Assembly (NCBI GenBank): GCA_002269645.1
Contig: NIVC01000631.1
Coordinates: 1 to 64,000, forward strand
Reading direction: 5' to 3'
DNA length: 64,000 nt
Source: Macrostomum lignano
Taxonomy: Eukaryota
A program made the position numbers and the translations under genes. Of the stretch, positions 16,664-60,995 are shown piece after piece (position 1 is the first letter of the stretch; each line of letters opens with the position of its first letter). Below the pieces are notes generated by a model. That model was not told the DNA's origin. It ran no database searches and was given only the letters and a program-made list of their open reading frames with translations.

Positions 16664-19600
16664 TTAGCTATTCATGACTTCATATATTTTAGCTACACCA
16701 GTGAGCTCTTTTCTGACTCTTTTTTCATTTGTAGCATATCCTATCTTGTGTATTTGATTGCTATTTAAGAGGTATTGACAGAAGTATTTTTTCCTGATCT
16801 CTTCAGTTTGTGGACATTCGGTCAAGTAGTGTAGAATGTCAGAACCATTTCGCGCTCCACACATTTTACATGGTTCTTGAGAAAAAAAGTTGGGTGTAAT
16901 CTCGCATTTCAGTTTTAGGAGGGTTGTTAAGAATTTTTTGTTTCTAAATGTACATGGAAAGAAATCTGAAAGGTCGGGCCTGCAGATTTTTTTGTAGAGA
17001 TAGGCGTTTTTGTAGAGTTTAATATGTTGCTGATTCTCTAGCTTTTGGCTAAGTTCTCTTTCTCTGTGTATCTTGAGGTGCTTTTTCACTAGGTATTTCT
17101 CGTTATTAAAGCTTTGGGAAAGTTTATCTTCAGTTAGTGCTTTTAGGTCTATACTTTCTAGTTTCTTTAGTACATTCATTTTCCATGGATTTTTTTGGCC
17201 GGTGTTTGAGTAGAAAATTTCTAGAGTCGTTTGGCAGAGTTTTTTGTGTCTAATCTTCAGCCAGTAGATGAGGTAGGTTTTAGCGATTCGTTGAGAGATT
17301 GGAGTAAGCTCAAGTTCTGATGATACCACACTGTTGCTAGCAAATTTTGGTAGATTGAGGAGATATTTGTAGAATTTCAGCTGAATATTATCAATAGCTT
17401 TTGTATCAGACATGGTAGCCAGAGGGCCCCAGAGCTCACAACCGTAAGTGATAACGGGGGTAACAAGCGCGTCAAATAGTCTGCGAATGAGTGTGATGTC
17501 TAGGGACGTATTCTTTACCCTATGGAGTAGGGAAAACATGGCTGTATATCCCTGCTTAGTTTGGTGTTCAATACATTTTTTAAAGCTGTTTTTTGGTTCA
17601 AAAATAATTCCCAGGTATTTAAATTCATTTACTTCCTCTATTTCTTGGTTGTCGTAGTATATTTTTGTAGCAATGCTTTCTGTGTCGTTTTTTTGTCTGG
17701 TATTGCCCTGCATGAACTTTGTTTTGCTTGCGTTTACTTTAAAGTAATTTTGTTTGCAGTAATTTTCCATAGTCGTAAGTGTGTCTTGAAGTTCGTCTTT
17801 GTTTTTAGCTAGAATGGCTTGATCGTCTGCAAAGAGTAGGATGAGTGGGAAAGCAGATCTCGTAAGAGAGCGCCTAGCGCTAGAGAGTTCAAGATATTCA
17901 ACAATGTCGTCAATATATAGTTCAAAAAGGATGGTAGAGAGAGGGTTGCCTTGAAGAACACCTTTAGATATTGGGATTGGCTGGGTTTCATCATCATCAT
18001 CATCATTTTTTAGAATGAAGCAGGCATTTTTATGCATGTTCTTGATAAGTTCCGTCATTTGACCTTTAATACCCTGGTTATCCGTTTTGTGCCAAAGGGT
18101 TGGTTGATTTAAGCTATCGAAGGCTTTTTCATAGTCAACAAATCCAATAAAGAGTTCTTCTTTGTTGTAGATGGATTGGTTTATAATGTTGTAAAGATTA
18201 AAACATTGGTCGATTGTGCTGTGATTGGGCTTGAAACCGTATTGGTATTTTGATATAAGATTGTTTGCGTATGCTAGGTTTTCGAGTCTGGATTTAATAA
18301 TTTGGCAAAAGAGCTTGCCAAGAATTGGTTGAATGCAGATTCCTCTGTAATTGTTGGGGTCGGCACTGCTGCCTTTGTTTTTATAAATCGGATGAAGTGT
18401 ATTTGTTATCCAACTAGTTGGGAAGGTTCCTTGTTTGAGTGCTTCGTTGAAAAGTGAGCATAGGAGGTCAGCAAGTTCGTTCTCGAGGTATTTGAGTGTT
18501 TCTACATATACTTTATCGTGCCCAGGTGCTTTGTCGGTTTTGAGCTTTTTAATATGTTTTATAACTTCTTCTTTGGTGAATGGGGCATTGAAATCCTCTA
18601 AATCAGCCAGAATAGGGTTGTCAAGGTGAAGATTGTATGATAGTCTAATGCTGCTGTCTTGTTCAGTTACAAGATTTTGAAAGTGTATGATAAATTTTTC
18701 ATCAATTGTTACTCTGTTGTTTGAGGGATTTGGTGTTTTTAATAAGTTCCAAAGTTGTTTTGTATCGTTTTGAATAAAGGCTTGGTTGATCATGTTGTCT
18801 GCACAGAGAGTTGTTTCAAATTTCCATGAAGTGAGCTTTTTTTCGTATGCTTTTTTGAGTTGTACTTTGCTTGAGAGGTTGTTGGGAGTAGGGAAGGTTT
18901 TATATCTTCTGCAGGCATGTCTAGCAGCGTTTCTTAAATCTTTAAGGAAGCGAGGCAGTGTTGAGCATAGTGGGTTCTTTATCTCTACTGTGATGTTGTT
19001 TTGAATTTGTCTAACTTTTCTACTTAATTCATTTATAAAAGCTGGGTTTTGTATGTCTAGATTTGTGATTTTGTCATTCATGTTTTTCAGGTCATTTGCG
19101 AAGTTATTGATATGTTTTTCTTGTTGCAGGTTGGGTTTATGTGACTTTTTTAGGACTCTATATCTCGTTTTCGAGTTATTGGTTGCTTGTTTAGTTTCTG
19201 TGATTTCCTCTGTGAATTCACTTGATAGGGAGAGCACTATTTGGTTGTGGTCGCTAAAGTAGGTGTGGTTCTTTACTTTAAAGTCTTCGAGGTGTTGGAG
19301 TAAGCTGGTAGAGACGAAACAGAGATCTATAACAGAGGAACCAGATTTTGAGAGAAAGGTGAATTCACCATTTGTGTCTGATAATGATCTACCATTGATT
19401 AGATGCAGGTTGTATGAGTCAGTAATCTGGTTAAGTAGTCTACCATTTTTGCAGGTTTTCTTGTCTTGGCTTTGTCTAGTAAGTGAGATGTTTTTTGCTC
19501 TGGTGGTATATATTGAATTTAAATCTATGTATGAGGTATTGTTTATATGAGCATTGAAGTCTCCAATAAGGAAGATGTTTTCTTCGGAGTGGTAAGCATC

Positions 19601-20266
19601 CAGGAGAATTGTTAACTGTTCCCAATTTTCTTCTTCATAATATTTTGAAGACAGTGGGGGTATATAGGAGTTTATTAAGGTAAAGCTTTTGTTTTTATCC
19701 TTTTTGTGTTTAAAATTTAGTGTCAAGAAGTTTTTATAATGTTTGAATGATTCTGTAACATTGTATTGTGTATCTAGTGACTTTTTGTAAGCTGTTAATA
19801 ATCCACCAGAAGCTCTGCCAATGAATTTACAGCCTTTTTTGTTTGCAGGCTTTTGGTATGTCATGTAGTTTTCAGACAGGTTGTTGATTTTGAGTCGCTT
19901 GTTTTCATTTTTTGTGTCTATTATCCAAGTTTCTTGAAGGCAGAGAATATTATTCTTAAAAATTGATTCAGTTTCCAGTAGTTCAAGTTTGGGAATCATC
20001 ACAGAGTCTTTTATTGTGTAAAGTCCATTGATATTCCAGCTGCTAATAGTAAATTTTTCTTTATCAATTTTTTGGATAATATTAAATTCAAGGAGTTTTG
20101 ATTTGATATTGTAAGGAATTTTTTTGATCTTTTGAGCATTGTTATTTCTAATAGAAATGAGGTACTCTCTAGTGTATTGTATCCGCTTTTCATTTGCCTG
20201 GATAATATTTTGACTATTTTGACCATTAAGTGTTGGGGTATTTAAGTCACAGTTTACAGAGGAAGT
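16664..20266 (-). CDS. LINE ORF2: apurinic endonuclease, reverse transcriptase, C-terminal CCHC
   Basis: APE motifs SWNINGL, LCLQETW, IGDFNAH, SVIDLCF, SDH; RT motifs YRGI, QYGF, DYEKAFDS, QGNPLS, LFADD, YLG; CKMC..HYLTEC. The frame is open 88 codons further upstream than the ORF track start (20002), up to the ORF1 stop. Confidence 0.95.
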   Translation of the reverse strand, partial: TSSVNCDLNTPTLNGQNSQNIIQANEKRIQYTREYLISIRNNNAQKIKKIPYNIKSKLLEFNIIQKIDKEKFTISSWNINGLYTIKDSVMIPKLELLETESIFKNNILCLQETWIIDTKNENKRLKINNLSENYMTYQKPANKKGCKFIGRASGGLLTAYKKSLDTQYNVTESFKHYKNFLTLNFKHKKDKNKSFTLINSYIPPLSSKYYEEENWEQLTILLDAYHSEENIFLIGDFNAHINNTSYIDLNSIYTTRAKNISLTRQSQDKKTCKNGRLLNQITDSYNLHLINGRSLSDTNGEFTFLSKSGSSVIDLCFVSTSLLQHLEDFKVKNHTYFSDHNQIVLSLSSEFTEEITETKQATNNSKTRYRVLKKSHKPNLQQEKHINNFANDLKNMNDKITNLDIQNPAFINELSRKVRQIQNNITVEIKNPLCSTLPRFLKDLRNAARHACRRYKTFPTPNNLSSKVQLKKAYEKKLTSWKFETTLCADNMINQAFIQNDTKQLWNLLKTPNPSNNRVTIDEKFIIHFQNLVTEQDSSIRLSYNLHLDNPILADLEDFNAPFTKEEVIKHIKKLKTDKAPGHDKVYVETLKYLENELADLLCSLFNEALKQGTFPTSWITNTLHPIYKNKGSSADPNNYRGICIQPILGKLFCQIIKSRLENLAYANNLISKYQYGFKPNHSTIDQCFNLYNIINQSIYNKEELFIGFVDYEKAFDSLNQPTLWHKTDNQGIKGQMTELIKNMHKNACFILKNDDDDDETQPIPISKGVLQGNPLSTILFELYIDDIVEYLELSSARRSLTRSAFPLILLFADDQAILAKNKDELQDTLTTMENYCKQNYFKVNASKTKFMQGNTRQKNDTESIATKIYYDNQEIEEVNEFKYLGIIFEPKNSFKKCIEHQTKQGYTAMFSLLHRVKNTSLDITLIRRLFDALVTPVITYGCELWGPLATMSDTKAIDNIQLKFYKYLLNLPKFASNSVVSSELELTPISQRIAKTYLIYWLKIRHKKLCQTTLEIFYSNTGQKNPWKMNVLKKLESIDLKALTEDKLSQSFNNEKYLVKKHLKIHRERELSQKLENQQHIKLYKNAYLYKKICRPDLSDFFPCTFRNKKFLTTLLKLKCEITPNFFSQEPCKMCGARNGSDILHYLTECPQTEEIRKKYFCQYLLNSNQIHKIGYATNEKRVRKELTGVAKIYEVMNS

Positions 20267-20776
20267 TCAGTAGGTTTTAATGAAGGGAACTCCCCTCTTA
20301 TAGCCAATTCGGATGTTTTTCTCACCATTTTCTTGACGAGTCTTAAGCTCTTTAACAATCTTCTGCTTAAATGCCCGTTCCTTTTCTGTTAAGTCGTTCT
20401 CGATCCGAATACGGGAGTAGGCAGAGCCAGTTTCGCGCAGGTTTCTCAGATTACCGAAGAAGGCCGCTTTGTCGCTATCGTTGACCAGCCGAACAACGAG
20501 GGGCCTTGGTCGATTGCTGAGAGGTTGTTCGCGACCGATCCGCCTGGTGGCGACAATTGGGACAGTTGCGGGGGACATTTTGAGCCCATCCTGCATAAAG
20601 TCCTCGAGCTTAGCGTCTTCTTGGAGTCCAAAAACTATGATGTTATTCTTCTTTATACCGCGCTGCCTGACTTCCTCCACGATTTCATCAAAGCTGATGT
20701 CGTAGGTGACAGTTTGCTTCCCGCTCTCAATCGACTCTAGCTCTTCTATGCGTTCTTCGAGGGCCGTCAGCTTTAA
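20267..20776 (-). CDS. LINE ORF1, C-terminal part (coiled coil plus RRM/CTD-type), 5'-truncated
   Basis: KLTALEERIEELESIE...KNNIIVFGLQE...RPRPLVVRL...IRIENDLT; frame open from 20776, no ATG before the coiled coil. Confidence 0.8.
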   Translation of the reverse strand, partial: LKLTALEERIEELESIESGKQTVTYDISFDEIVEEVRQRGIKKNNIIVFGLQEDAKLEDFMQDGLKMSPATVPIVATRRIGREQPLSNRPRPLVVRLVNDSDKAAFFGNLRNLRETGSAYSRIRIENDLTEKERAFKQKIVKELKTRQENGEKNIRIGYKRGVPFIKTY

Positions 20777-22520
20777 TTATAACCCCCACCCCCCACCACC
20801 CTTGAATAGAGGGCGAAATAATTCCGTAAAATAATTTAACGTGCGAAACTACAGGATAGCCGTTAGGCCTAGCATGCCTACAGCCTACTCTAATTATTTT
20901 TAAGTTTCAGAGGATAGAAACATGCATACATTAGTCATTTTTTACTTTTAATATCTATTCTGTTCAGTACTTTCACTTTTTCGTTTTTCAGTTGCACATC
21001 ATGTTGATTTCTTCGTACTTGTACTTAGGACTTTTAAATATTTTCAGAATTCCCCGCCTGCCCAGGCATCAAGCATGCAGTTCCAGGAAACCAAAAAAAC
21101 AAATCAACGTCTTACTCGCCAAATAAGTTACTTTCTGATCTTTTCATGCTAAGAAGTAAGACCGTCTATTTTTAAAAGTTCATAAAAAAGTTGTTGTTTA
21201 TCATTTTGCACATAGCTAACTGTAGTAATTTGTTTTAATGATTTGAACGTGTTTTAGCTTACTCCATGGAGATTCATGAATATAACTGGATCGCCAGAAG
21301 CTTGATTTTTTCGGTTTCATTCATAGGCGAGTATCAGCTTGTCTTACTGTGACTAAATCTTACGTCAAATGTTTTTTGCATAATTGCAAATTGCAAATTG
21401 CAAATTAACATATAATTATTTGCAATTAGGCTTATTACTATTTAGTAATGTCGCCCAGCTAGCAAGTGCCAGCAAGCAGGCACACGCTGTTTGATCGAAC
21501 AAGCTCGGGGGCGGGGGGCAGTCAGTGGCGGTCAGGGGGTCAGGCCGATGCTCAGAAGGTCCTCCATCAATGTGGCTCGCAGGGCTTGTGGAATCATATT
21601 GAATTACATGTGCAGGCTTCCACAGCTCCCATGCAAATATAGATGAGTTTCCAAAGGATGCGTATGTGTGGAATTATTACTTTGACCTATGACAGAATAA
21701 CACCAGACCAATGTCACGGCTGACTAGCAAAAATTATTTTGTCTTTTAGAAAATTTATCATTGAAAAAATAAAAAGAAAAAGGCAGCTAACACCGAGTTT
21801 ATACTCAACTCTTCAACTCTTTTGCATTGTAAATGAAAAAAGAAAACGTAATTAAGCAGTAGCTCGTTTAACCGCGGGTGATAAATAAAATATGGTTATA
21901 ACGAGTTTTCGTATATTTCTAATACATAAAGTCCCGTTGATTTATATCAACAGGTGAAAAGGCATGCGTTCGTTATCGATGGTTAGCTACGAGGCTTTGA
22001 GAAGACTGATGAAGGGAGTGTATCTTCATCCGAATGCGTGTAAGCTAAAATAAGAATCTGCTATATAACAGCTCAGTAGCAAATAGGCATAGAAAGAAAT
22101 AAATATCTACAGTTAATGGCATGTAACACATGCAATGGCAGCAGATAAAAATTATCCTCTAGTAGCTTTACTCGAGCTAACGTGCTGCAGGTTTCAAACA
22201 CGTTATACGAGTTTTAGCTAGCTACTGCAATTCCAGCCGGTCAAAACAATAATAACAAAAAGGCGACAGAGAAATTACGCATTTACGAAAGTGTAGTAGC
22301 ACTCAAAAAATGAAAGATCAAATTCGCAAATATTATACAAAGTGAGGAAGTTTACATTTTGACCAAATTTTCTTTTGAAAAAAATACTCCTTGAAACTGG
22401 CTTTGATTGGCTGTCGATGTATCGGAGTGAGAAAGCCAATCATGCATTAGGTCCTGGGTAGTAACCATCGCTACCCTGGTGAAGTTTTCTTAAGCACTAC
22501 GAGCTACACTTGTCTGTAGG

Positions 22521-22909: not shown

Positions 22910-23260
22910 GACCAATAGCCTCACCAATATGGCTAATAGCGTCACCAATATGGCTAATAGCGTCACCAATATGGCTAATAGTGTCACCAATAAGGCTAAT
23001 AGTGTCACCAATATGGTTAATGGCGTCACCAATATGGCTAATAGCGTCACCAATATGGCTAATAGCGTCACCAATATGGCTAATAGCGTCACCAATATGG
23101 CTAATAGCGTCACCAATATGGCTAATAGCGTCACCAATATGGCTAATAGCGTCACCAATATGGCTAATAGCGTCACCAATAAGGCCAATATAGCGTCACC
23201 AATAGGGCTAATAGCGTCACCGATACGGCTAATAGCGTCACCGATACGGTTAATAGCATG
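22910..23260. repeat. Intronic minisatellite, 21-bp unit (ATGGCTAATAGCGTCACCAAT)
   Basis: About 16 copies; source of the spurious IASPIWL / MANSVTN ORFs. Confidence 0.95.
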
Positions 23261-23515: not shown

Positions 23516-23811
23516 CTGAAAACCTTCCTCCTTCGGCCAGCTCTGCCCGAACCGGCGGCAGCCGACGACGCCGCCGATGCCGGCTGCTGCGCTGGCGGCG
23601 GATCCGCGCCCGGCGCCTCGCCCTGCGCCCAACGGAGAATCGCTTCGCCAAGCCTGGCGCCCATCTCCTCCAGCTCGCGGGTGCCCAGATGGCAGCCACG
23701 GTAGGGTCCCTGGTCGCAGCAGCTGTACGAGGCCTCCAAAGTGTAGGCGCGCAGGATGCCGAGGTGGCGCCAGGCGACAACGCGAGCCGTGGACTCCTTG
23801 GAGCGGTCCAC
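23516..23811 (-). CDS. AGTPBP1: AGTPBP1 exon
   Basis: [52 protein letters not shown] matches the CCP1 C-terminal catalytic region; ccccag| and AG|gttagc. Confidence 0.92.
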
Positions 23812-23889
23812 CTGGGGCGGGTCGATGGGTACAGAGTGTTGAGTTTTGCACGGAACTATGGAACTTTGAATGCCGCAATGGGAAGGATC

Positions 23890-24490
23890 CGCTCACACAA
23901 CAGGACCCACACACAACTGGAGAACCCGCTCACACAACTGGAGAACCCGCTCACACAACTGGAGAACCCGCTCACACAACTGGAGAACCCGCTCACACAA
24001 CAGGAAAACTCGCTCACACAACAGGAAAACTCGCTCACACAACAGGAGAACCCGCTCACACAACAGAACCCGCTCACACAACAGGAAAACCCGCTCACAC
24101 AACAGGAAAACCCGCTCACACAACAGGAGAACCCGCTCACACAACAGAACCCGCTCACACAACAGAACCCGCTCACACAACAGAATTCTCTCACACAACA
24201 GAATTCGCTCACACAACAGAATTCGCTCACACAACAGGAGAACCCGCTCACATAACCCGCTCACATAATGGGAGAACCCACTCACACAATGGGAGAACCC
24301 ACTCATACAATGGGAGAACCCACTCACACAACAAGAGAACCCGCTCACACAACAAGAGAACCCACTCACACAACAGGAGAACCCGCTCACACAACAAGAG
24401 AACCCGCTCACACAACAAGAGAACCCGCTCACACAACAAGAGAAACCACTCACACAACAAGAGAACCTGCTCACACAACAGCACAGAGAG
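23890..24490. repeat. Intronic minisatellite, 21/18-bp units (CCCGCTCACACAACAGGAGAA)
   Basis: About 29 copies filling intron 23812-24513. Confidence 0.95.
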
Positions 24491-24513
24491 ACACATCAAA
24501 GTCTGCACCGCAC

Positions 24514-24837
24514 CTTGAAGTTGCAGTTCCGCCAGGCAAACGCGGGGGCCATCTGAGCCAGAAGTCGCGGCAACTCCCGATATCCGGGATCCTCAATCCA
24601 AACGCCTCCTCCGGGGCCGCCGCTGACTGGTCTGACGCCGTTGTCATCGCGACGAGCTTCATTGTCGTTAGCCGGAGGTTCAGCGGCCAGCCAGCCGGGA
24701 TTGTCGCGGTCATCAGGCAGCCAGCTAAGGCTGGGGGAGCAGCCGAACATGAAGACGTTGTTGTGACGGGAGTGGCCGTGACAGTCGATGTACACAACTG
24801 GGCGGCGGCCGGACGAGCATAGGTAGCTCATGAGGCC
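24514..24837 (-). CDS. AGTPBP1: AGTPBP1 exon with third Zn ligand (DCHGHS)
   Basis: GLMSYL...PVVYIDCHGHSRHNNVFMFGC...IEDPGYRELPRLLAQMAPAFAWRNCNFK; ctcag| and AAG|gtgcgg, phase 0 on both sides. Confidence 0.93.
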
Positions 24838-28429: not shown

Positions 28430-29340
28430 ACACTGGTTCAATAAGCGGAGATGCCGATCCTTAAGCGGAGATGCAGATTCATTAAGCGGAGATGCAGATT
28501 CATTAAGCGGAGATGCCAATTCATTAAGCGGAGATGCCAATTCATTAAGCGGAGATGCAGATTCATCAAGCGGAGATGCAAATTCATTAAGCGGAGATGC
28601 CAATTCATTAAGCGGAGATGCCAATTCATTAAGCGGAGATGCCAATTCATTAAGCGGAGGATGCCAGTACATCAAGCGGAGATGCCGATTCATTAAGCGG
28701 AGGATGCCAGTACATCAAGCGGAGATGCCGATTCATTAAGCGGAGATGCCGATTCATTAAGCGGAGATGCAAATTCATTAAGCGGAGGATGCCAGTACAT
28801 CAAGCGGAGATGCCGATTCATTAAGCGGAGATGCCGATTCATTAAACGGAGATGCAGATTCAACAAACAGAGATACCGATTCAACAAGCAGAGAAACCGA
28901 TTCAACAAACAGAGATACCGATTCAACAAGCAGAGAAACCGATTCAACAAACAGAGATACCGATTCAACAAACAGAGAAACCGATTCAACAAACAGAGAT
29001 ACCGATTCAACAAACAGAGAAACCGATTCAACAAGCAGAGATACCGATTCAACAAACAGAGATACCGATTCAACAAGCAGAGAAACCGATTCAACAAACA
29101 GAGATACCGATTCAACAAACAGAGAAACCGATTCAACAAGCAGAGATACCGATTCAACAAACAGAGATACCGATTCAACAAACAGAGATACCGATTCAAC
29201 AAACAGAGATACCGATTCAACAAACAGAGAAACCGATTCAACAAGCAGAGATACCGATTCAACAAACAGAGATACCGATTCAACAAACAGAGATACCGAT
29301 TCAACAAACAGAGATACCGATTCAACAAGCAGAGATACGG
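28430..29340. repeat. Two adjacent, related 21-bp minisatellites (GCGGAGATGCCRATTCATTAA then ACAGAGATACCGATTCAACAA)
   Basis: Switch at ~28850; both units share the core GAGATRCCGATTCA. Confidence 0.95.
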
Positions 29341-29402
29341 ATTTAATAAGCAGAGAAGTCAATTAGCAACCTAAGTTTCTACTAAGAAGTTATCAAGCCA
29401 AC

Positions 29403-34064: not shown

Positions 34065-35224
34065 GTCAGGTTTGAGAGCTCAAATTAAGCTTTTCAAGTA
34101 TAGTTCAATAGAGAAAGAATTAAATATTCGGATGAAGATTCTTGGAAGAGCTGCAACATGCTTCAAATATATAGACAAATTGAGCATGCGGATGTCAACA
34201 CTTATAGCTGCTTGGATCGTGAAATAATAACAGGCCAAATATGGAAATCGGAAACAAAGTTAATTTACACCATGTACACGCGTGCCAGATGTTGTCAGCT
34301 TGTTCAAGAATTGAATAAACAAACTTTGTTGTTGATCCGCCATAAAGCCTTCATGGGCGACCAAAATTAACAGTCAAGACTGTCAATAATATAGTATCAA
34401 ACTAGCGCGACTCATACAGTTGTTAAAGGAGATTCTACTTGGAATTATATGTATGAATACTTTACACACTCGCATGCATCTATTACGGGCTTAAATTTCT
34501 TATTGCGTTGAATATGAATCAATTCTACACGCGAAACACGGATATTCAAATATTAGAAAATTACAATAAATGGCTAATTGCAACTCAAGAATTCCAAAAT
34601 CGTCTTCCTAATAATAGGTACAAAAGCTATTATAATAAATGCATCAAAAATATTTTACTCCAGAATGTGATGACTCTAAAAGAGAGTCGAACATCCAATA
34701 TTCTCTTGATGAACAATTCATACATCTGAAGGCTTAACAATCTCTTTTTGAAAATACTGTTTTCTACTAGCTTTTTCGGAGGGTACAAACAAAAAACCTT
34801 TTTGTCTTAATTCGTTATTGCTCGTAAATTACTCTTATTCGTATAGTAAAATTCATGGTAGTCGTTACGTTTTGCTACGTTTTTTCCGCAACGTCCGCGA
34901 GGGTCTGCGGAGTCGCCGTGGGTGGCCATTCGTTCTATGACGGCAGTGCCTGCAGTCCTAGAGGCCCTTCATTTACCACAATGCCACTAATTTAAAGCAC
35001 CCTCGCTTTGCTGGGTTGCTAAGCAAGGCGCCACATTCACGCCCACATCTCGATGATTTCCTTGACCTTACGAGTATTTTCTCAACCGTTGAAGGCGCTC
35101 AGCAACTCAGTAAATAAGCTAGTCGAGAAATACATGTTTATAAGTACGTACGAGTACATGCAAATAGATAGTTGCGTGTAAATATATGTACAGGTAGTAA
35201 GCACATGTGACTGCCAGCAAGTTC

Positions 35225-35281
<57 letters not shown>

Positions 35282-35290
35282 GATTGATAT

Positions 35291-35353
<63 letters not shown>

Positions 35354-35354
35354 T

Positions 35355-35409
<55 letters not shown>

Positions 35410-35430
35410 TAGATAGATAGATAGATAGAT

Positions 35431-35492
<62 letters not shown>

Positions 35493-35528
35493 TGATAGAT
35501 TGATAAATAGATAGATAGATAGATAGAC

Positions 35529-35585
<57 letters not shown>
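35225..35585. repeat. (GATA)n microsatellite, left of the 272-bp array
   Basis: AGAT tetranucleotide run with few interruptions. Confidence 0.98.
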
Positions 35586-35586
<1 letters not shown>

Positions 35587-38500
35587 TAGATAGCGAGAAA
35601 GAGCGAGCGAAGCGAGCTCTTTCGAGCTTGCTTGCCGCAGCCAATCAAGCTGAAAGCACGCACACAAGATCACCGGAAACGATTAAGGCAGCTGGAAAGC
35701 CAATGGGCGCGGTAAGCGCTTTTATCCAGAGGAACTACCTGCTGGAACCAGCCTGCCGTTCGAAAATCAGACTACTCAAGTAGTGCAAAAGAGTGCGAGC
35801 AACTACCGAGAAATCTAATTTTCGTAACCGCTCCGGTGCAGGTCCTGGCAATAGATGGTAGATAGCGAGAAAGAGCGAGCGAAGCGAGCTCTTTCGAGCT
35901 TGCTTGCCGCAGCCAATCAAGCTGAAAGCACGCACACAAGATCACCGGAAACGATTAAGGCAGCTGGAAAGCCAATGGGCGCGGTAAGCGCTTTTATCCA
36001 GAGGAACTACCTGCTGGAACCAGCCTGCCGTTCGAAAATCAGACTACTCAAGTAGTGCAAAAGAGTGCGAGCAACTACCGAGAAATCTAATTTTCGTAAC
36101 CGCTCCGGTGCAGGTCCTGGCAATAGATGGTAGATAGCGAGAAAGAGCGAGCGAAGCGAGCTCTTTCGAGCTTGCTTGCCGCAGCCAATCAAGCTGAAAG
36201 CACGCACACAAGATCACCGGAAACGATTAAGGCAGCTGGAAAGCCAATGGGCGCGGTAAGCGCTTTTATCCAGAGGAACTACCTGCTGGAACCAGCCTGC
36301 CGTTCGAAAATCAGACTACTCAAGTAGTGCAAAAGAGTGCGAGCAACTACCGAGAAATCTAATTTTCGTAACCGCTCCGGTGCAGGTCCTGGCAATAGAT
36401 GGTAGATAGCGAGAAAGAGCGAGCGAAGCGAGCTCTTTCGAGCTTGCTTGCCGCAGCCAATCAAGCTGAAAGCACGCACACAAGATCACCGGAAACGATT
36501 AAGGCAGCTGGAAAGCCAATGGGCGCGGTAAGCGCTTTTATCCAGAGGAACTACCTGCTGGAACCAGCCTGCCGTTCGAAAATCAGACTACTCAAGTAGT
36601 GCAAAAGAGTGCGAGCAACTACCGAGAAATCTAATTTTCGTAACCGCTCCGGTGCAGGTCCTGGCAATAGATGGTAGATAGCGAGAAAGAGCGAGCGAAG
36701 CGAGCTCTTTCGAGCTTGCTTGCCGCAGCCAATCAAGCTGAAAGCACGCACACAAGATCACCGGAAACGATTAAGGCAGCTGGAAAGCCAATGGGCGCGG
36801 TAAGCGCTTTTATCCAGAGGAACTACCTGCTGGAACCAGCCTGCCGTTCGAAAATCAGACTACTCAAGTAGTGCAAAAGAGTGCGAGCAACTACCGAGAA
36901 ATCTAATTTTCGTAACCGCTCCGGTGCAGGTCCTGGCAATAGATGGTAGATAGCGAGAAAGAGCGAGCGAAGCGAGCTCTTTCGAGCTTGCTTGCCGCAG
37001 CCAATCAAGCTGAAAGCACGCACACAAGATCACCGGAAACGATTAAGGCAGCTGGAAAGCCAATGGGCGCGGTAAGCGCTTTTATCCAGAGGAACTACCT
37101 GCTGGAACCAGCCTGCCGTTCGAAAATCAGACTACTCAAGTAGTGCAAAAGAGTGCGAGCAACTACCGAGAAGTCTAATTTTCGTAACCGCTCCGGTGCA
37201 GGTCCTGGCAATAGATGGTAGATAGCGAGAAATAGCGAGCGAAGCGAGCTCTTTCGAGCTTGCTTGCCGCAGCCAATCAAGCTGAAAGCACGCACACAAG
37301 ATCACCGGAAACGATTAAGGCAGCTGGAAAGCCAATGGGCGCGGTAAGCGCTTTTATCCAGAGGAACTACCTGCTGGAACCAGCCTGCCGTTCGAAAATC
37401 AGACTACTCAAGTAGTGCAAAAGAGTGCGAGCAACTACCGAGAAATCTAATTTTCGTAACCGCTCCGGTGCAGGTCCTGGCAATAGATGGTAGATAGCGA
37501 GAAAGAGCGAGCGAAGCGAGCTCTTTCGAGCTTGCTTGCCGCAGCCAATCAAGCTGAAAGCACGCACACAAGATCACCGGAAACGATTAAGGCAGCTGGA
37601 AAGCCAATGGGCGCGGTAAGCGCTTTTATCCAGAGGAACTACCTGCTGGAACCAGCCTGCCGTTCGAAAATCAGACTACTCAAGTAGTGCAAAAGAGTGC
37701 GAGCAACTACCGAGAAATCTAATTTTCGTAACCGCTCCGGTGCAGGTCCTGGCAATAGATGGTAGATAGCGAGAAAGAGCGAGCGAAGCGAGCTCTTTCG
37801 AGCTTGCTTGCCGCAGCCAATCAAGCTGAAAGCACGCACACAAGATCACCGGAAACGATTAAGGCAGCTGGAAAGCCAATGGGCGCGGTAAGCGCTTTTA
37901 TCCAGAGGAACTACCTGCTGGAACCAGCCTGCCGTTCGAAAATCAGACTACTCAAGTAGTGCAAAAGAGTGCGAGCAACTACCGAGAAATCTAATTTTCG
38001 TAACCGCTCCGGTGCAGGTCCTGGCAATAGATGGTAGATAGCGAGAAAGAGCGAGCGAAGCGAGCTCTTTCGAGCTTGCTTGCCGCAGCCAATCAAGCTG
38101 AAAGCACGCACACAAGATCACCGGAAACGATTAAGGCAGCTGGAAAGCCAATGGGCGCGGTAAGCGCTTTTATCCAGAGGAACTACCTGCTGGAACCAGC
38201 CTGCCGTTCGAAAATCAGACTACTCAAGTAGTGCAAAAGAGTGCGAGCAACTACCGAGAAATCTAATTTTCGTAACCGCTCCGGTGCAGGTCCTGGCAAT
38301 AGATGGTAGATAGCGAGAAAGAGCGAGCGAAGCGAGCTCTTTCGAGCTTGCTTGCCGCAGCCAATCAAGCTGAAAGCACGCACACAAGATCACCGGAAAC
38401 GATTAAGGCAGCTGGAAAGCCAATGGGCGCGGTAAGCGCTTTTATCCAGAGGAACTACCTGCTGGAACCAGCCTGCCGTTCGAAAATCAGACTACTCAAG

Positions 38501-41500
38501 TAGTGCAAAAGAGTGCGAGCAACTACCGAGAAATCTAATTTTCGTAACCGCTCCGGTGCAGGTCCTGGCAATAGATGGTAGATAGCGAGAAAGAGCGAGC
38601 GAAGCGAGCTCTTTCGAGCTTGCTTGCCGCAGCCAATCAAGCTGAAAGCACGCACACAAGATCACCGGAAACGATTAAGGCAGCTGGAAAGCCAATGGGC
38701 GCGGTAAGCGCTTTTATCCAGAGGAACTACCTGCTGGAACCAGCCTGCCGTTCGAAAATCAGACTACTCAAGTAGTGCAAAAGAGTGCGAGCAACTACCG
38801 AGAAATCTAATTTTCGTAACCGCTCCGGTGCAGGTCCTGGCAATAGATGGTAGATAGCGAGAAAGAGCGAGCGAAGCGAGCTCTTTCGAGCTTGCTTGCC
38901 GCAGCCAATCAAGCTGAAAGCACGCACACAAGATCACCGGAAACGATTAAGGCAGCTGGAAAGCCAATGGGCGCGGTAAGCGCTTTTATCCAGAGGAACT
39001 ACCTGCTGGAACCAGCCTGCCGTTCGAAAATCAGACTACTCAAGTAGTGCAAAAGAGTGCGAGCAACTACCGAGAAATCTAATTTTCGTAACCGCTCCGG
39101 TGCAGGTCCTGGCAATAGATGGTAGATAGCGAGAAAGAGCGAGCGAAGCGAGCTCTTTCGAGCTTGCTTGCCGCAGCCAATCAAGCTGAAAGCACGCACA
39201 CAAGATCACCGGAAACGATTAAGGCAGCTGGAAAGCCAATGGGCGCGGTAAGCGCTTTTATCCAGAGGAACTACCTGCTGGAACCAGCCTGCCGTTCGAA
39301 AATCAGACTACTCAAGTAGTGCAAAAGAGTGCGAGCAACTACCGAGAAATCTAATTTTCGTAACCGCTCCGGTGCAGGTCCTGGCAATAGATGGTAGATA
39401 GCGAGAAAGAGCGAGCGAAGCGAGCTCTTTCGAGCTTGCTTGCCGCAGCCAATCAAGCTGAAAGCACGCACACAAGATCACCGGAAACGATTAAGGCAGC
39501 TGGAAAGCCAATGGGCGCGGTAAGCGCTTTTATCCAGAGGAACTACCTGCTGGAACCAGCCTGCCGTTCGAAAATCAGACTACTCAAGTAGTGCAAAAGA
39601 GTGCGAGCAACTACCGAGAAATCTAATTTTCGTAACCGCTCCGGTGCAGGTCCTGGCAATAGATGGTAGATAGCGAGAAAGAGCGAGCGAAGCGAGCTCT
39701 TTCGAGCTTGCTTGCCGCAGCCAATCAAGCTGAAAGCACGCACACAAGATCACCGGAAACGATTAAGGCAGCTGGAAAGCCAATGGGCGCGGTAAGCGCT
39801 TTTATCCAGAGGAACTACCTGCTGGAACCAGCCTGCCGTTCGAAAATCAGACTACTCAAGTAGTGCAAAAGAGTGCGAGCAACTACCGAGAAATCTAATT
39901 TTCGTAACCGCTCCGGTGCAGGTCCTGGCAATAGATGGTAGATAGCGAGAAATAGCGAGCGAAGCGAGCTCTTTCGAGCTTGCTTGCCGCAGCCAATCAA
40001 GCTGAAAGCACGCACACAAGATCACCGGAAACGATTAAGGCAGCTGGAAAGCCAATGGGCGCGGTAAGCGCTTTTATCCAGAGGAACTACCTGCTGGAAC
40101 CAGCCTGCCGTTCGAAAATCAGACTACTCAAGTAGTGCAAAAGAGTGCGAGCAACTACCGAGAAATCTAATTTTCGTAACCGCTCCGGTGCAGGTCCTGG
40201 CAATAGATGGTAGATAGCGAGAAAGAGCGAGCGAAGCGAGCTCTTTCGAGCTTGCTTGCCGCAGCCAATCAAGCTGAAAGCACGCACACAAGATCACCGG
40301 AAACGATTAAGGCAGCTGGAAAGCCAATGGGCGCGGTAAGCGCTTTTATCCAGAGGAACTACCTGCTGGAACCAGCCTGCCGTTCGAAAATCAGACTACT
40401 CAAGTAGTGCAAAAGAGTGCGAGCAACTACCGAGAAATCTAATTTTCGTAACCGCTCCGGTGCAGGTCCTGGCAATAGATGGTAGATAGCGAGAAAGAGC
40501 GAGCGAAGCGAGCTCTTTCGAGCTTGCTTGCCGCAGCCAATCAAGCTGAAAGCACGCACACAAGATCACCGGAAACGATTAAGGCAGCTGGAAAGCCAAT
40601 GGGCGCGGTAAGCGCTTTTATCCAGAGGAACTACCTGCTGGAACCAGCCTGCCGTTCGAAAATCAGACTACTCAAGTAGTGCAAAAGAGTGCGAGCAACT
40701 ACCGAGAAATCTAATTTTCGTAACCGCTCCGGTGCAGGTCCTGGCAATAGATGGTAGATAGCGAGAAAGAGCGAGCGAAGCGAGCTCTTTCGAGCTTGCT
40801 TGCCGCAGCCAATCAAGCTGAAAGCACGCACACAAGATCACCGGAAACGATTAAGGCAGCTGGAAAGCCAATGGGCGCGGTAAGCGCTTTTATCCAGAGG
40901 AACTACCTGCTGGAACCAGCCTGCCGTTCGAAAATCAGACTACTCAAGTAGTGCAAAAGAGTGCGAGCAACTACCGAGAAATCTAATTTTCGTAACCGCT
41001 CCGGTGCAGGTCCTGGCAATAGATGGTAGATAGCGAGAAAGAGCGAGCGAAGCGAGCTCTTTCGAGCTTGCTTGCCGCAGCCAATCAAGCTGAAAGCACG
41101 CACACAAGATCACCGGAAACGATTAAGGCAGCTGGAAAGCCAATGGGCGCGGTAAGCGCTTTTATCCAGAGGAACTACCTGCTGGAACCAGCCTGCCGTT
41201 CGAAAATCAGACTACTCAAGTAGTGCAAAAGAGTGCGAGCAACTACCGAGAAATCTAATTTTCGTAACCGCTCCGGTGCAGGTCCTGGCAATAGATGGTA
41301 GATAGCGAGAAAGAGCGAGCGAAGCGAGCTCTTTCGAGCTTGCTTGCCGCAGCCAATCAAGCTGAAAGCACGCACACAAGATCACCGGAAACGATTAAGG
41401 CAGCTGGAAAGCCAATGGGCGCGGTAAGCGCTTTTATCCAGAGGAACTACCTGCTGGAACCAGCCTGCCGTTCGAAAATCAGACTACTCAAGTAGTGCAA

Positions 41501-43871
41501 AAGAGTGCGAGCAACTACCGAGAAATCTAATTTTCGTAACCGCTCCGGTGCAGGTCCTGGCAATAGATGGTAGATAGCGAGAAAGAGCGAGCGAAGCGAG
41601 CTCTTTCGAGCTTGCTTGCCGCAGCCAATCAAGCTGAAAGCACGCACACAAGATCACCGGAAACGATTAAGGCAGCTGGAAAGCCAATGGGCGCGGTAAG
41701 CGCTTTTATCCAGAGGAACTACCTGCTGGAACCAGCCTGCCGTTCGAAAATCAGACTACTCAAGTAGTGCAAAAGAGTGCGAGCAACTACCGAGAAATCT
41801 AATTTTCGTAACCGCTCCGGTGCAGGTCCTGGCAATAGATGGTAGATAGCGAGAAAGAGCGAGCGAAGCGAGCTCTTTCGAGCTTGCTTGCCGCAGCCAA
41901 TCAAGCTGAAAGCACGCACACAAGATCACCGGAAACGATTAAGGCAGCTGGAAAGCCAATGGGCGCGGTAAGCGCTTTTATCCAGAGGAACTACCTGCTG
42001 GAACCAGCCTGCCGTTCGAAAATCAGACTACTCAAGTAGTGCAAAAGAGTGCGAGCAACTACCGAGAAATCTAATTTTCGTAACCGCTCCGGTGCAGGTC
42101 CTGGCAATAGATGGTAGATAGCGAGAAAGAGCGAGCGAAGCGAGCTCTTTCGAGCTTGCTTGCCGCAGCCAATCAAGCTGAAAGCACGCACACAAGATCA
42201 CCGGAAACGATTAAGGCAGCTGGAAAGCCAATGGGCGCGGTAAGCGCTTTTATCCAGAGGAACTACCTGCTGGAACCAGCCTGCCGTTCGAAAATCAGAC
42301 TACTCAAGTAGTGCAAAAGAGTGCGAGCAACTACCGAGAAATCTAATTTTCGTAACCGCTCCGGTGCAGGTCCTGGCAATAGATGGTAGATAGCGAGAAA
42401 GAGCGAGCGAAGCGAGCTCTTTCGAGCTTGCTTGCCGCAGCCAATCAAGCTGAAAGCACGCACACAAGATCACCGGAAACGATTAAGGCAGCTGGAAAGC
42501 CAATGGGCGCGGTAAGCGCTTTTATCCAGAGGAACTACCTGCTGGAACCAGCCTGCCGTTCGAAAATCAGACTACTCAAGTAGTGCAAAAGAGTGCGAGC
42601 AACTACCGAGAAATCTAATTTTCGTAACCGCTCCGGTGCAGGTCCTGGCAATAGATGGTAGATAGCGAGAAAGAGCGAGCGAAGCGAGCTCTTTCGAGCT
42701 TGCTTGCCGCAGCCAATCAAGCTGAAAGCACGCACACAAGATCACCGGAAACGATTAAGGCAGCTGGAAAGCCAATGGGCGCGGTAAGCGCTTTTATCCA
42801 GAGGAACTACCTGCTGGAACCAGCCTGCCGTTCGAAAATCAGACTACTCAAGTAGTGCAAAAGAGTGCGAGCAACTACCGAGAAATCTAATTTTCGTAAC
42901 CGCTCCGGTGCAGGTCCTGGCAATAGATGGTAGATAGCGAGAAAGAGCGAGCGAAGCGAGCTCTTTCGAGCTTGCTTGCCGCAGCCAATCAAGCTGAAAG
43001 CACGCACACAAGATCACCGGAAACGATTAAGGCAGCTGGAAAGCCAATGGGCGCGGTAAGCGCTTTTATCCAGAGGAACTACCTGCTGGAACCAGCCTGC
43101 CGTTCGAAAATCAGACTACTCAAGTAGTGCAAAAGAGTGCGAGCAACTACCGAGAAATCTAATTTTCGTAACCGCTCCGGTGCAGGTCCTGGCAATAGAT
43201 GGTAGATAGCGAGAAAGAGCGAGCGAAGCGAGCTCTTTCGAGCTTGCTTGCCGCAGCCAATCAAGCTGAAAGCACGCACACAAGATCACCGGAAACGATT
43301 AAGGCAGCTGGAAAGCCAATGGGCGCGGTAAGCGCTTTTATCCAGAGGAACTACCTGCTGGAACCAGCCTGCCGTTCGAAAATCAGACTACTCAAGTAGT
43401 GCAAAAGAGTGCGAGCAACTACCGAGAAATCTAATTTTCGTAACCGCTCCGGTGCAGGTCCTGGCAATAGATGGTAGATAGCGAGAAAGAGCGAGCGAAG
43501 CGAGCTCTTTCGAGCTTGCTTGCCGCAGCCAATCAAGCTGAAAGCACGCACACAAGATCACCGGAAACGATTAAGGCAGCTGGAAAGCCAATGGGCGCGG
43601 TAAGCGCTTTTATCCAGAGGAACTACCTGCTGGAACCAGCCTGCCGTTCGAAAATCAGACTACTCAAGTAGTGCAAAAGAGTGCGAGCAACTACCGAGAA
43701 ATCTAATTTTCGTAACCGCTCCGGTGCAGGTCCTGGCAATAGATGGTAGATAGCGAGAAAGAGCGAGCGAAGCGAGCTCTTTCGAGCTTGCTTGCCGCAG
43801 CCAATCAAGCTGAAAGCACGCACACAAGATCACCGGAAACGATTAAGGCAGCTGGAAAGCCAATGGGCGCG
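35586..43871. repeat. Head-to-tail tandem array, 272-bp unit x ~30.5, near-identical
   Basis: ORF track recurs every 272 bp; the only variants I spotted are A>G at 37173 and G>T at 37233 and 39953. Confidence 0.98.
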
Positions 43872-44418
<547 letters not shown>

Positions 44419-45038
44419 AATCGATATACTAAAATTAAATTTTAAATCTTTAGTACCATAAGCCAAAACTGGTTAATCAATACGACACTGTAAAAGTCAT
44501 AAGCATTTATTGCACAGGTAATTCTAAAAAAATGGTTCAATTAATTTAAACCGAAAGTTAAGCTCGCCAGGATTGTTCTGCTTTGAATAATTTGGACGCA
44601 AGAAAAAATATTTGCCAGTTTGCCAGTAATGTATTTCACAAATCCAATACGATTCAAGTCTGCACAAATACAACTACAACTACTAGAGATAAATATTGGT
44701 AAGTAGTGTGGCATGCAAATTCTCTACATATTTATGATAAGAAAAACGGATTTACACAGCGGATTACACAGAGCAGATGTAGAAGTTAATTTACTCCTAG
44801 TCCTTAAGAATCACTGTTTTTTTGTTGGATCTGTCGAAGAAAAAAAATTAGGGGTCATTTCAAGTCGACTCTAATTAGAAATGATCACAACAGTGAAAAC
44901 AAAAGCAAAATAACCTACTCATTGAAAATTCACCTACTCATTTTAGTAGCCAAATAAGCATTTTTCTGTATTTTTTAATTAAAAAAGACCAGAAAGCGAC
45001 ACTGGCCACAAATTTCCTGCTCATTACTTTGGAAACGT

Positions 45039-47313: not shown

Positions 47314-47477
47314 TGAATCCATCAAATCTCCGCCCTCCGCTCTTCCCAATCCCTCCTCAACCAGCCCAACTCTGCAAGGTGCGTCACTCAAAAGTCAATA
47401 CGTATACGTATACTCAGGTGCCAGCGTTATTAATGGGAATTAATAATAATCTATTAATAAATTAATGAATGATTCAC

Positions 47478-48125
47478 CTGCGGTCCGCTTAAAACCACCG
47501 TCTCCATGCAGTCTGGCCGGCCGCGGAAATCCGGCACCAGGCATTCGACTAGCATGTCTGGCCTTAGGCGCAGAATCTCGGACACGGTGGCGCCAATGTG
47601 TCCGGCGCCGCCGTCAGCTAAGTCGTCCCGATCAACGGAGGTCAGCACAACGTAGTGACCGGACCAGCCGGCCACAGCCTTGGCGGTGTTGGCAGGCTCC
47701 ATCGGATCCAGCGGCGGCGGCTTTAGGCTGGTCTTGACCGAGCAGAACCGACAGGCCCTGGTGCAAGTGTCGCCCATCAGCATGATGGTGGCCGTGGCCG
47801 CCTCGCCGCTCCAGCATTCGCCAATATTCGGACAGCGGGCCTCCTCGCACACTGTATGCAGCTTCAACTGACGGAGGCTGCGCTGCATCTTGGCGAACTG
47901 TCCGCCAGCCGGGATCTCCCGCTTAAGCCAGTCTGGCAGTCGTAGCCGCGCCGGAGGCCGCTGCGCATTGGGCAGGAAATCCTCCAGGCCCGGCCCGCCG
48001 GCCACGCGGTTCTTCTGCGCATGGCTGAGGCTGCACAGACTGGCGCGGCGGCTGCGCAGGATGATTGTTGCTGGGCAGCGGATCGCGTCCACTGCTAGAA
48101 TGCGTTGCTGATTGACTAGAGCCAT
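47478..48125 (-). CDS. LIAS: Lipoyl synthase exon 1 with mitochondrial transit-like N-terminus
   Basis: ATG at 48125; [12 protein letters not shown] (CX4CX5C) and CTRACRFC (radical SAM CX3CX2C); CAG|gtgaat donor. Confidence 0.97.
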
Positions 48126-48189
48126 AAGGGATAGAGTACACAATTGAAATGCTTACACAGTCAGGAGTCAGCTGTTTTCCCATATCTGT

Positions 48190-59600: not shown

Positions 59601-60334
59601 TCCCACCCTCGTTTAACAACAACAACAGTCCATAATATGGTTAAGCAATTTACCCAATCAGAAGACTACTACGGAGTGACGTAATTTCCCCGATGTACAT
59701 TGCACTGGTGGCTAAAAATAGACTTGCGGAAATAACTTCGAGCTAAATTTACTCGGTTTATGAAGATTAATAAGTAATTATTATATATTTAGGACACGAG
59801 AGAGCGCTGGCCTTTAACATGGTCAAGTGCTATACTGCATAAGTTTCAGGGCTGGGCCTTTCGAGTGAGCAAGTCATGCGTGCAAAGCCAAGGCCTGAGG
59901 CATGGCGAGTGGGGGAGCTAAATCGGGTGTGGTGGGGGGACGGGGCGATTCCGCTGGCCCGATCCTTCAGCTGCTGCGGTCTATTAGGTCCGCCGCGCCG
60001 TGAGGCTTAACCAAACTAAGCGGCCATCTTATTGCCAGTCATATGGTTATAAAACAACGTTGACCACTTCGCCAAGGCTTTTGAAGTAGCTGGTGCACTT
60101 TGATAAAATAAAATACAAAAACGTCTTCTATTTAACGCAAGATGAACTGTTACAGTCTGAACAACTAAAAAAGTGGTACTTTCACAGAGATCCTGAAAGG
60201 TTAAGAACATTAACGTATAGGTACTGAAATCAACTATTCGCACTTTGAAAAGTTTTCTGACAGAGAATCATGGTTCCTTGATCGCCAAGTGCAAATATTA
60301 CCCTTGTATGATCACTTTGATCATCGCTTGTCAC

Positions 60335-60995
60335 TCTAATCCACTGTGTCACTCTGATCCACTGTGTCACTCTGATCCACTGTGTCACTCTGATCCACTG
60401 TGTCACTCTGATCCACTGTGTCACTCTGATCCACTGTGTCACTCTGATCCACTGTGTCACTCTGATCCACTGTGTCACTCTGATCCACTGTGTCACTCTG
60501 ATCCACTGTGTCACTCTGATCCACTGTGTCACTCTGATCCACTGTGTCACTCTGATCCACTGTGTCACTCTGATCCACTGTGTCACTCTGATCCACTGTG
60601 TCACTCTGATCCACTGTGTCACTCTGATCCACTGTGTCACTCTGATCCACTGTGTCACTCTGATCCACTGTGTCACTCTGATCCACTGTGTCACTCTGAT
60701 CCACTGTGTCACTCTGATCCACTGTGTCACTCTGATCCACTGTGTCACTCTGATCCACTGTGTCACTCTGATCCACTGTGTCACTCTGATCCACTGTGTC
60801 ACTCTGATCCACTGTGTCACTCTGATCCACTGTGTCACTCTGATCTGTGTCACTCTGATCCACTGTGTCACTCTGATCTGTGTCACTCTGATCCACTGTG
60901 TCACTCTGATCTGTGTCACTCTGATCTGTGTCACTCTGATCTGTGTCACTCTGATCTGTGTCACTCTGATCTGTGTCACTCTGATCTGTGTCACT
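60335..60995. repeat. Minisatellite, 18-bp unit (CACTGTGTCACTCTGATC) switching to a 15-bp unit
   Basis: About 28 perfect 18-mers, then a mixed zone, then 15-mers lacking CAC. Confidence 0.97.

Follow-up and report, generated by a model that had tools for sequence, protein, structure and literature searches.

How long interspersed nuclear elements (LINEs) translate their second open reading frame (ORF2) has been worked out in two experimental models only (PMC3894237). Group 3 LINEs of Paramecium contain an in-frame pair of ORF1 and ORF2, for which stop-codon readthrough has been proposed (PMC5405496). Leaky stop codons have been grouped by sequence context into type I (CAR-YYA/CAR-NBA), type II (UGA-CGG/CUA) and type III (UAG-GGV/GUA/GAU) (PMC13517186, PMC4446449); CAR-NBA after a stop promotes readthrough (PMC4446449), and UAGGGG, UAGGAU and UAGGUA are Beier-Grimm type III hexanucleotides (PMC13517186). 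No paper describing in-frame ORF1 and ORF2 with readthrough for an animal LINE was found in the literature searched. One LINE of Arabidopsis reportedly has an in-frame amber stop. Here we analysed 64,000 nucleotides (nt) of DNA from Macrostomum lignano (GenBank assembly GCA_002269645.1, contig NIVC01000631.1, positions 1 to 64,000; hereafter the window), which carry a LINE whose ORF1 and ORF2 lie in one frame and are divided by a single UGA. We give a probability of about 0.5 to the reading that low-level readthrough of this UGA makes an ORF1p-ORF2p fusion. All coordinates are numbered on the window, and the LINE is read on its minus strand.

The open stretch of ORF1 covers 168 codons (20773-20270) and ends in ACC TAC TGA, with the TGA at 20269-20267, exactly where the initial annotation of this stretch had placed it; with its stop, the ORF1 remnant occupies 20267-20773. 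The terminator stands in the context UAC UGA ACU UCC and is the sole stop dividing the two ORFs, the ORF2 frame running on from the next codon for 1200 codons, with no internal stop and no frameshift, to a TAA at 16666-16664 (16664-20266 with the stop). The first 88 of these codons (20266-20003) contain no ATG, as had also been noted at the outset, and neither GTG nor TTG; next downstream come a GTG at 20002 and, at 19999-19997, the first ATG. The stretch comprises a linker of 72 codons in frame 0 (20051-20266), followed by the start of the endonuclease domain, and the two sequences that the initial annotation had read there, KRIQYTREYLISIR in the linker and SWNINGL at the start of the endonuclease, are both encoded. 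Two coding regions in the same frame, one stop between them and a downstream region without its own start make up the layout of programmed readthrough. The -1 and +1 frames shut within a few codons of the junction, so the window lacks the layout of frameshifting, an overlapping downstream ORF at a slippery site.

We compared where the first AUG falls with the layout of the endonuclease. The Pfam family Exo_endo_phos matched residues 76-343 of the ORF2 frame (Exo_endo_phos_2 also matched), and residues 73-347 (19226-20050) aligned to human APE1 in a phmmer search of PDB, with SWNINGL opposite SWNVDGL of APE1. The catalytic Asn78 of SWNINGL (codon 20033-20035) and Glu112 were near-invariant among 23 relatives. 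In the AlphaFold2 (AF2) model of the endonuclease, strand 1 was formed by residues 72-78, in a block with a predicted local distance difference test (pLDDT) score of 92. Met90, encoded by the first AUG of the frame (19997-19999), falls between Asn78 and Glu112; therefore, a protein begun at Met90 is without strand 1 and the catalytic Asn, and so without part of the active site. The truncated endonuclease that the initial annotation had foreseen for this start is thus upheld by the APE1 alignment, the relatives and the model. That ORF2 begins at this AUG, or at the GUG at 20002, with the linker untranslated, has in our view a next to negligible probability: it is the first AUG in frame and the one that gene callers choose, but such a start gives up strand 1 and a near-invariant residue and leaves 88 open, ORF2-like codons unexplained.

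Shuffling gave a probability of ~0.0005 for an open stretch of 88 codons at 29% GC and of ~0.001-0.0005 for the 72 open codons from the UGA to the endonuclease, and the other two frames contain 3 and 12 stops across the 88-codon stretch. The codon-usage log-likelihood was +19.7 bits in frame 0 vs. -27 and -59 bits in the other frames, that is, usage was ORF2-like in frame 0 only. Because of this open frame and this usage, the linker is coding in frame 0, beginning with the codon that follows the stop. The AUG-free run is unremarkable in itself, since Met makes up only 1.2% of ORF2 and 88 codons without AUG have a probability of ~0.32-0.36; what carries meaning is that the frame stays open onward from the stop, and where the first AUG falls. 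Besides AUG, all 88 codons lack GUG, CUG and ACG, and the only near-cognate codons of the linker are AUU, AUC, AUA and AAG, of which the earliest (AUU) is at codon 21.

The linker is rich in N, I, K and Q, and no homologue of it was found in Pfam and sequence searches. Its AF2 model was mostly of low confidence (pLDDT 34-61), with one predicted helix at residues 18-42; a stretch modelled in this way would suit a tether, for which it is not itself evidence. The motif YTREYLI (linker residues 31-37; 20156-20176, minus strand) lies inside the predicted helix and fits the Y-x4-L-hydrophobic consensus of eIF4E binding. This reading was dropped, as the pattern appeared in ~7% of shuffled linkers and twice more in ORF2 and is probably due to chance.

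Whether a UGA at this position ends a complete protein was judged from the relatives of ORF1. A word-index search with ORF1 found nothing, and an exhaustive phmmer search returned 1015 relatives, typically 210-300 amino acids (aa) long, the named ones being from beetle and aphid. Among the 150 best, with a median length of 246 aa, the matches stop at residues 165-167 of the 168 in the query and 3-10 residues from the C-termini of the relatives themselves, and hundreds of relatives terminate 1-5 residues from the position of the window UGA. The AF2 model of ORF1, built from 13 sequences, had a pLDDT of 83.7. Foldseek matched it to the human LINE-1 ORF1p trimer (2ykp/2yko/2ykq, E 4e-7 to 5e-5) and also to the RRM structure 2w7a, and the match to human L1 ORF1p spans coiled coil, RRM and C-terminal domain (CTD) over the whole ORF1 remnant. 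The Pfam family of L1 ORF1p gave no match at E <= 1, the only match being Cmr1_like_C at E 0.07, which is under its cutoff; the predicted likeness to L1 ORF1p is structural and profile-level only. We conclude that the UGA is the native terminator of ORF1, because the ORF1s of the relatives end there and the fold model finishes with the CTD of L1 ORF1p.

The relatives also carry ~75 further N-terminal residues, which make up a Cys-rich domain and the greater part of the coiled coil. None of them aligns to the sequence upstream of 20767, and the median residue of the relatives at this upstream end is 75. By this comparison the window copy is 5'-truncated, its ORF1 having this one break and being without ~75 N-terminal residues and the start codon. 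Because the truncation took the ORF1 start, the copy cannot be autonomous and is probably inert. It is nevertheless young, because ORF2 has neither stops nor frameshifts in 1200 codons, and a private mutation at the junction is therefore unlikely. This bears on the possibility that the UGA is a private nonsense mutation in a single long ORF1-ORF2 frame, or, as a variant, that the host reads UGA as sense. The frame is indeed continuous across the UGA and single-ORF LINEs exist, but the stop falls at the end of hundreds of separate ORF1s, where a random nonsense mutation would fall with a chance of ~0.7%, and the fold model is complete there, so that we regard this explanation as most improbable. 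A reassigned genetic code was rejected, as no other in-frame UGA occurs in 1368 codons.

Downstream of the endonuclease, a reverse transcriptase (RT) domain was recognized at ORF2 residues 632-888 (17603-18373; Pfam RVT_1, E 6e-32), and a Cys-X2-Cys...His-X4-Cys motif is present in the translation near the C-terminus (16814-16870), with C1133, C1136 and H1146 invariant in the alignment. Judged by these predicted domains, the element is an APE-type LINE, with an N-terminal APE-like endonuclease, then reverse transcriptase, and an upstream ORF1 of RNA-binding type. It represents a new, divergent APE-type LINE family with an L1-ORF1p-like ORF1, and its ORF2 is at most 29% identical to anything searchable. 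A 10-bp direct repeat (20778-20769 / 16427-16418) is the sole candidate for a target-site duplication and a weak one, ~0.4-1 such repeats being expected by chance. At the 3' end of the element neither a poly(A) nor a simple-repeat tail was recognized, and an Rfam search of the window gave no matches. No second copy of the family was found in the window (blastn/tblastn), in a collection of 5.8 billion proteins, where the best match was 29% identical, or in JGI metagenomes. The argument is therefore built on relatives at a greater distance.

One set of relatives was obtained with ORF2, another with ORF1. The window groups with the loci L001, L002, L003 and L023, against the set found through ORF1, with 98% bootstrap, and residues 74-1162 of its ORF2 form one tblastn high-scoring segment pair with L001. 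L023 has an ORF1 of 284 aa with an AUG, a UAA, and ORF2 in frame 0 from the next codon. Its endonuclease motif begins nine codons after the UAA, and its first Met is codon 54, past the motif. The ORF2 of L023 contains one frameshift; L024, a member of this family that comes from a different assembly and is 99.8% identical, shows the identical junction and an intact ORF2 of 1103 codons. The stop context of both, UAA CAA CGA, fits the readthrough hexanucleotide CAR-NBA, with a chance probability of ~0.6-0.9%.

An alignment of the ORF2 lineage was then scanned against prokaryotic genome bins, yielding 80 LINE-bearing contigs (L026-L105); an alignment of the 13 ORF1 relatives was too divergent to serve as the seed for a locus scan. 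Wherever the junction was readable among these contigs, the in-frame layout was predominant. Eight loci (L026, L030, L031, L032, L034, L035, L039 and L046) have a complete ORF1 (358-691 codons) and ORF2 (up to 1224 codons) in one frame with one stop. This stop is UAG followed by G in all eight, the next triplet being GAA, GAC or GGG in two loci each and GUC or GUU in one each; UAGGGG, at two of the eight, is a type III hexanucleotide. The eight loci are unalignable at the nucleotide level, except for L032 and L034 (76%) and a 477-nt stretch of L039 and L046 that is 67% identical. Their linkers, of 6-103 codons, are all open, and in five of the eight the catalytic Asn is reached from the stop without an AUG. 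The genome bins in which these eukaryotic APE/RT LINEs were found are bacterial metagenome-assembled genomes, mostly of symbionts of marine invertebrates, and include Sedimenticola, Candidatus Thiodiazotropha, the Sulfurimonas endosymbiont of Alviniconcha boucheti and Metamycoplasmataceae; the LINE contigs are most likely contaminating host DNA.

Taken over the ORF2 lineage, the junction is in frame 0 with a single stop in ten loci (9-10 families), overlaps in the +1 frame in three and is in the -1 frame in two. Six of the 9-10 frame-0 families have no AUG before the catalytic Asn. Wherever the two ORFs do not overlap (ten junctions), ORF2 is in frame 0, and separate ORFs in differing frames were seen in no family; independent initiation would be insufficient to keep the frame. 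The single-stop layout is thus recurrent among relatives, with conserved stop contexts.

The three +1 junctions (L001, L002 and L003/L025), in which ORF2 overlaps ORF1 by 59-116 nt, bring in a further explanation, namely that ORF2 of the window family starts at an overlapping +1 AUG and that one frameshift early in ORF2 of this copy mimics the in-frame layout. L001 and L003 do carry the ORF2 AUG before the ORF1 stop, by 32 and 53 nt, respectively, and the window has a +1-frame AUG in good context (20326-20328, minus strand; A at -3, G at +4), 59 nt before the stop and overlapping the end of ORF1, which heads a short ORF ending a few codons past the UGA and is relevant only to this explanation. 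Such AUG-headed open stretches in the +1 frame cover 17-29% of element positions by chance, however, and the element shows no other stop or frameshift in 1368 codons, so that a single frameshift within the very short stretch required has a likelihood of ~1e-3. This stretch also lacks any homopolymer run that would suggest an assembly error, and the frame-0 layout recurs in 9-10 intact related families. A copy-specific defect of this kind is very unlikely.

A different junction was seen in the relatives found through ORF1, of which 18 loci were examined (L004-L008, L009-L022). In each of the 15 with an ORF2 downstream (about eight families), this ORF2 is in the -1 frame relative to ORF1 and overlaps its end. 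L009 and L010 have an AUGA stop-start overlap (L009:2440-2470; L010:845-870), which resembles the stop-start coupling of termination-reinitiation, while L004 and L005 have an AUG 15-27 nt downstream of the ORF1 stop, and L006 and L007/L008 have no AUG ahead of the endonuclease motif. Slippery-type heptamers abut the stop in several of these loci (A AAA AAC UAA in L007/L008/L011 and U UUA AAC UAA in L004), and a C-terminal Asn is found in 76 of the 150 best ORF1 relatives (LN 32, KN 25, EN 10). The heptamers and the constant -1 frame of ORF2 give this insect-type LINE group the appearance of a conserved -1 frameshift site.

The ORF2s of these loci are distant from the ORF2 of the window, matching it in the RT region only, and this is one of the points in favour of a chimera, in which ORF1 and ORF2 would derive from two LINE families through nested insertion or template switching and share a frame by coincidence. 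The closest relatives of ORF1 (insect-type, 31-38% identity) bear distant ORF2s, the ORF1s of the closest ORF2 relatives were undetected by BLAST, and ORF1 has ~50% GC vs. ~35% in ORF2. The GC step, however, lies inside ORF1 and away from the junction: the ORF1 remnant has ~48-52% GC, whereas 28-40% is found from ~60 nt before the end of ORF1 through the linker and ORF2 (20250-20850 vs. 16664-20250). Profile comparison with hhalign links the RRM core of the window ORF1 to the ORF1s of L001 (probability 93%), L023 (64%) and L035 (84%), placing them in the same RRM family. The flanks of the element contain no second ORF2 remnant, and the frame is open exactly from the ORF1 stop. We therefore consider that a chimera has only a slight probability. 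The ORF1s of L001, L023 and L035 have ~50-110 extra C-terminal residues past the RRM core, and the window has a similar low-complexity length after its stop, in the form of the linker.

Translation that enters ORF2 at the ORF1 stop is what the sequence points to, because the frame is continuous through a long coding linker, no start precedes the catalytic Asn, and all non-overlapping junctions are in frame 0. The initial annotation had held that full ORF2 needs either readthrough or non-AUG re-initiation, and this choice is supported by the native UGA, a linker coding from the stop, and the recurrent single-stop layout of the relatives. Readthrough is favoured because it explains the continuous frame, the missing start and the frame-0 junctions alike, together with the UAG-G and UAA-CAA contexts of the relatives. 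As we propose it, translation of an intact family member would mostly terminate at the UGA and release ORF1p, while in a small share of cases a near-cognate tRNA would read the UGA and the ribosome would carry on. The product would be an ORF1p-linker-ORF2p fusion at low stoichiometry, like retroviral Gag and Gag-Pol. We infer both the choice of readthrough over re-initiation and the existence of the fusion protein.

Several observations weigh against this proposal. The window context UGA ACU UCC fits none of types I-III, nor CAR-NBA, and hexanucleotides beginning UGA-A served as efficient-termination controls in yeast (PMC4446449), although epsilonretroviral readthrough takes place in the UGA-A contexts UGAAGA and UGAAGU (PMC13517186). 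Type III readthrough needs a stimulatory structure beginning ~8-12 nt past the stop. No RNA structure was predicted downstream of the window UGA (minimum free energy (MFE) z = +0.11), and none was significant downstream of the stops of L024 and six of the UAG relatives (z -0.89 to +1.63), these scores being based on MFE only, with pseudoknots and long-range pairings outside the method. An AUG lies 3-10 codons past the stop in L031, L032 and L034, where re-initiation is possible. In the tree, which is star-like, the frame-0 families fail to group together, and the identity of the stop varies by family (UGA, UAA, UAG). No second copy of the window family came to light, so that we infer, rather than see, that its UGA and frame are fixed. 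Finally, both experimentally studied LINEs, human L1 and SART1, make ORF2 by termination-linked re-initiation and not by fusion (PMC5972666, PMC1965478, PMC4072516). The bases UAC UGA ACU (20264-20272, minus strand), nine in all, also surround the UGA that is read through in the coat gene of phage Q-beta (PMC13517186, Table 1), a bacterial system, and we take the match as coincidence.

These points bring forward the alternative of termination-coupled, AUG-independent re-initiation, in which ribosomes that have terminated at the UGA would remain bound to the RNA and begin again a few codons on at a non-AUG codon, giving a separate ORF2p with the linker as its N-terminus. In human L1, translation of ORF2 depends on the termination of an ORF upstream, and any sense codon can take the place of the first ORF2 AUG (PMC1965478, PMC4072516, PMC5972666), and SART1 couples ORF2 to ORF1 at a UAAUG overlap, as related in PMC5972666. 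Some relatives have a stop/start overlap or an early AUG (L009/L010, L004/L005 and L031/L032/L034), the frame relation in the wider group varies among +1, -1 and 0, and the weak UGA-A context without downstream structure fits ordinary termination. On the other hand, natural re-initiating elements retain an AUG at or near the stop, whereas the window has none in 88 codons, and its linker offers no CUG, GUG or ACG and, as the earliest weak near-cognate, an AUU only at codon 21. Zorro3, a LINE with non-overlapping ORFs, requires its ORF2 AUG (PMC1965478). Re-initiation covers the continuous frame and the missing start only if it occurs at a non-AUG codon directly after the stop, and even then the frame bias of the ten non-overlapping junctions and the UAG-G at eight of eight loci would be left unexplained. 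Re-initiation is the strongest of the alternatives and one to be taken seriously for this element, if less probable than stop-codon readthrough, which remains the reading that we favour.

Extending readthrough to the relatives, we tentatively propose that an animal LINE lineage including the window element may make its endonuclease and RT only as an ORF1p-ORF2p fusion, through programmed readthrough of UAG-G, UAA-CAA or UGA, which would have arisen independently of retroviruses. Since the frame-0 families do not group in the tree, their layout is an ancestral one or one that has arisen repeatedly. If the proposal is true, the efficiency of termination would set the ratio of ORF1p to ORF2p, and ORF2p would be tethered in cis to the ORF1p particle. 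With one frame, one stop in a conserved context and an ORF2 often without AUG, the lineage would lend itself to the study of a third solution to ORF2 translation, a readthrough fusion such as retroviruses make. There is also a consequence for annotation, since gene callers begin ORF2 at the first internal Met, and truncated endonucleases are thus reported for such LINEs. The interest lies in the lineage-wide pattern more than in this truncated copy.

The rest of the window contains host exons and repeats. Exons of a cytosolic carboxypeptidase (CCP1/AGBL-like) are found on the minus strand at 30691-29396 (TPR_CCP1_N), 28290-27475 and 27254-27021, on the strand of the LINE and ~6 kb upstream of it in transcription order. 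A search with a carboxypeptidase exon gave best matches of only 45-47% identity, from scattered taxa. A lipoyl synthase exon with LIAS_N and Radical_SAM domains is at 47457-48143 (minus strand). Tandem arrays occupy 22914-23257, 23600-24800, 28700-29360, 35100-38900, 43840-44470 and 60230-61070; one consists of a 21-bp unit repeated 16 times, and several micro- and minisatellites appear as long repetitive ORFs. An array with a 272-bp period at ~35.6-38.8 kb gave evenly spaced weak tblastn matches.

Compared with described systems, the element shares with human and mouse LINE-1 the fold of ORF1 (coiled coil, RRM and CTD), the bicistronic RNA, the need for very small amounts of ORF2p and an ORF2 AUG that is dispensable in an assay (Alisch et al., 2006, as cited in PMC1965478, PMC4072516 and PMC5972666). 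According to these sources, the ORFs of L1 are separated by a 63-nt spacer that contains stops, its ORF2 naturally has an AUG and no fusion protein arises, whereas the window has no stop in the spacer, no AUG and a continuous frame. In SART1 of Bombyx, too, translation of ORF2 is linked at the junction to the ending of ORF1 translation (Kojima et al., 2005, as cited in PMC5972666 and PMC3894237). As described there, its ORF2 AUG overlaps the ORF1 stop in the -1 frame and a structure downstream is required; the window has neither such an AUG nor such a structure. The initial annotation had called readthrough unusual for an element without long terminal repeats (non-LTR). Rare it is, yet it is not unprecedented, having been proposed for the group 3 LINEs of Paramecium (PMC5405496). 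These differ in their ciliate host with a reassigned code, an ORF1 ending in a zinc finger and a separate RT clade, and are likened to the window by layout, not by sequence.

By analogy, gag-pol readthrough of the gamma- and epsilonretroviruses would be the closest functional analogue. The differences are that the window element is a non-LTR element without a protease to free the enzymes, that no downstream stem-loop or pseudoknot was detected by MFE scoring, that its hexanucleotide UGAACU is not among the listed motifs, and that it is known from sequence alone. Both systems have an RNA-binding structural gene and an enzyme gene in one frame, divided by one stop, with a downstream gene that has no start of its own (PMC13517186). 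In both, a low ratio of fusion to upstream product is expected, the UAG-G stops of the LINE relatives include UAGGGG, and some epsilonretroviruses use a UGA-A stop like that of the window.

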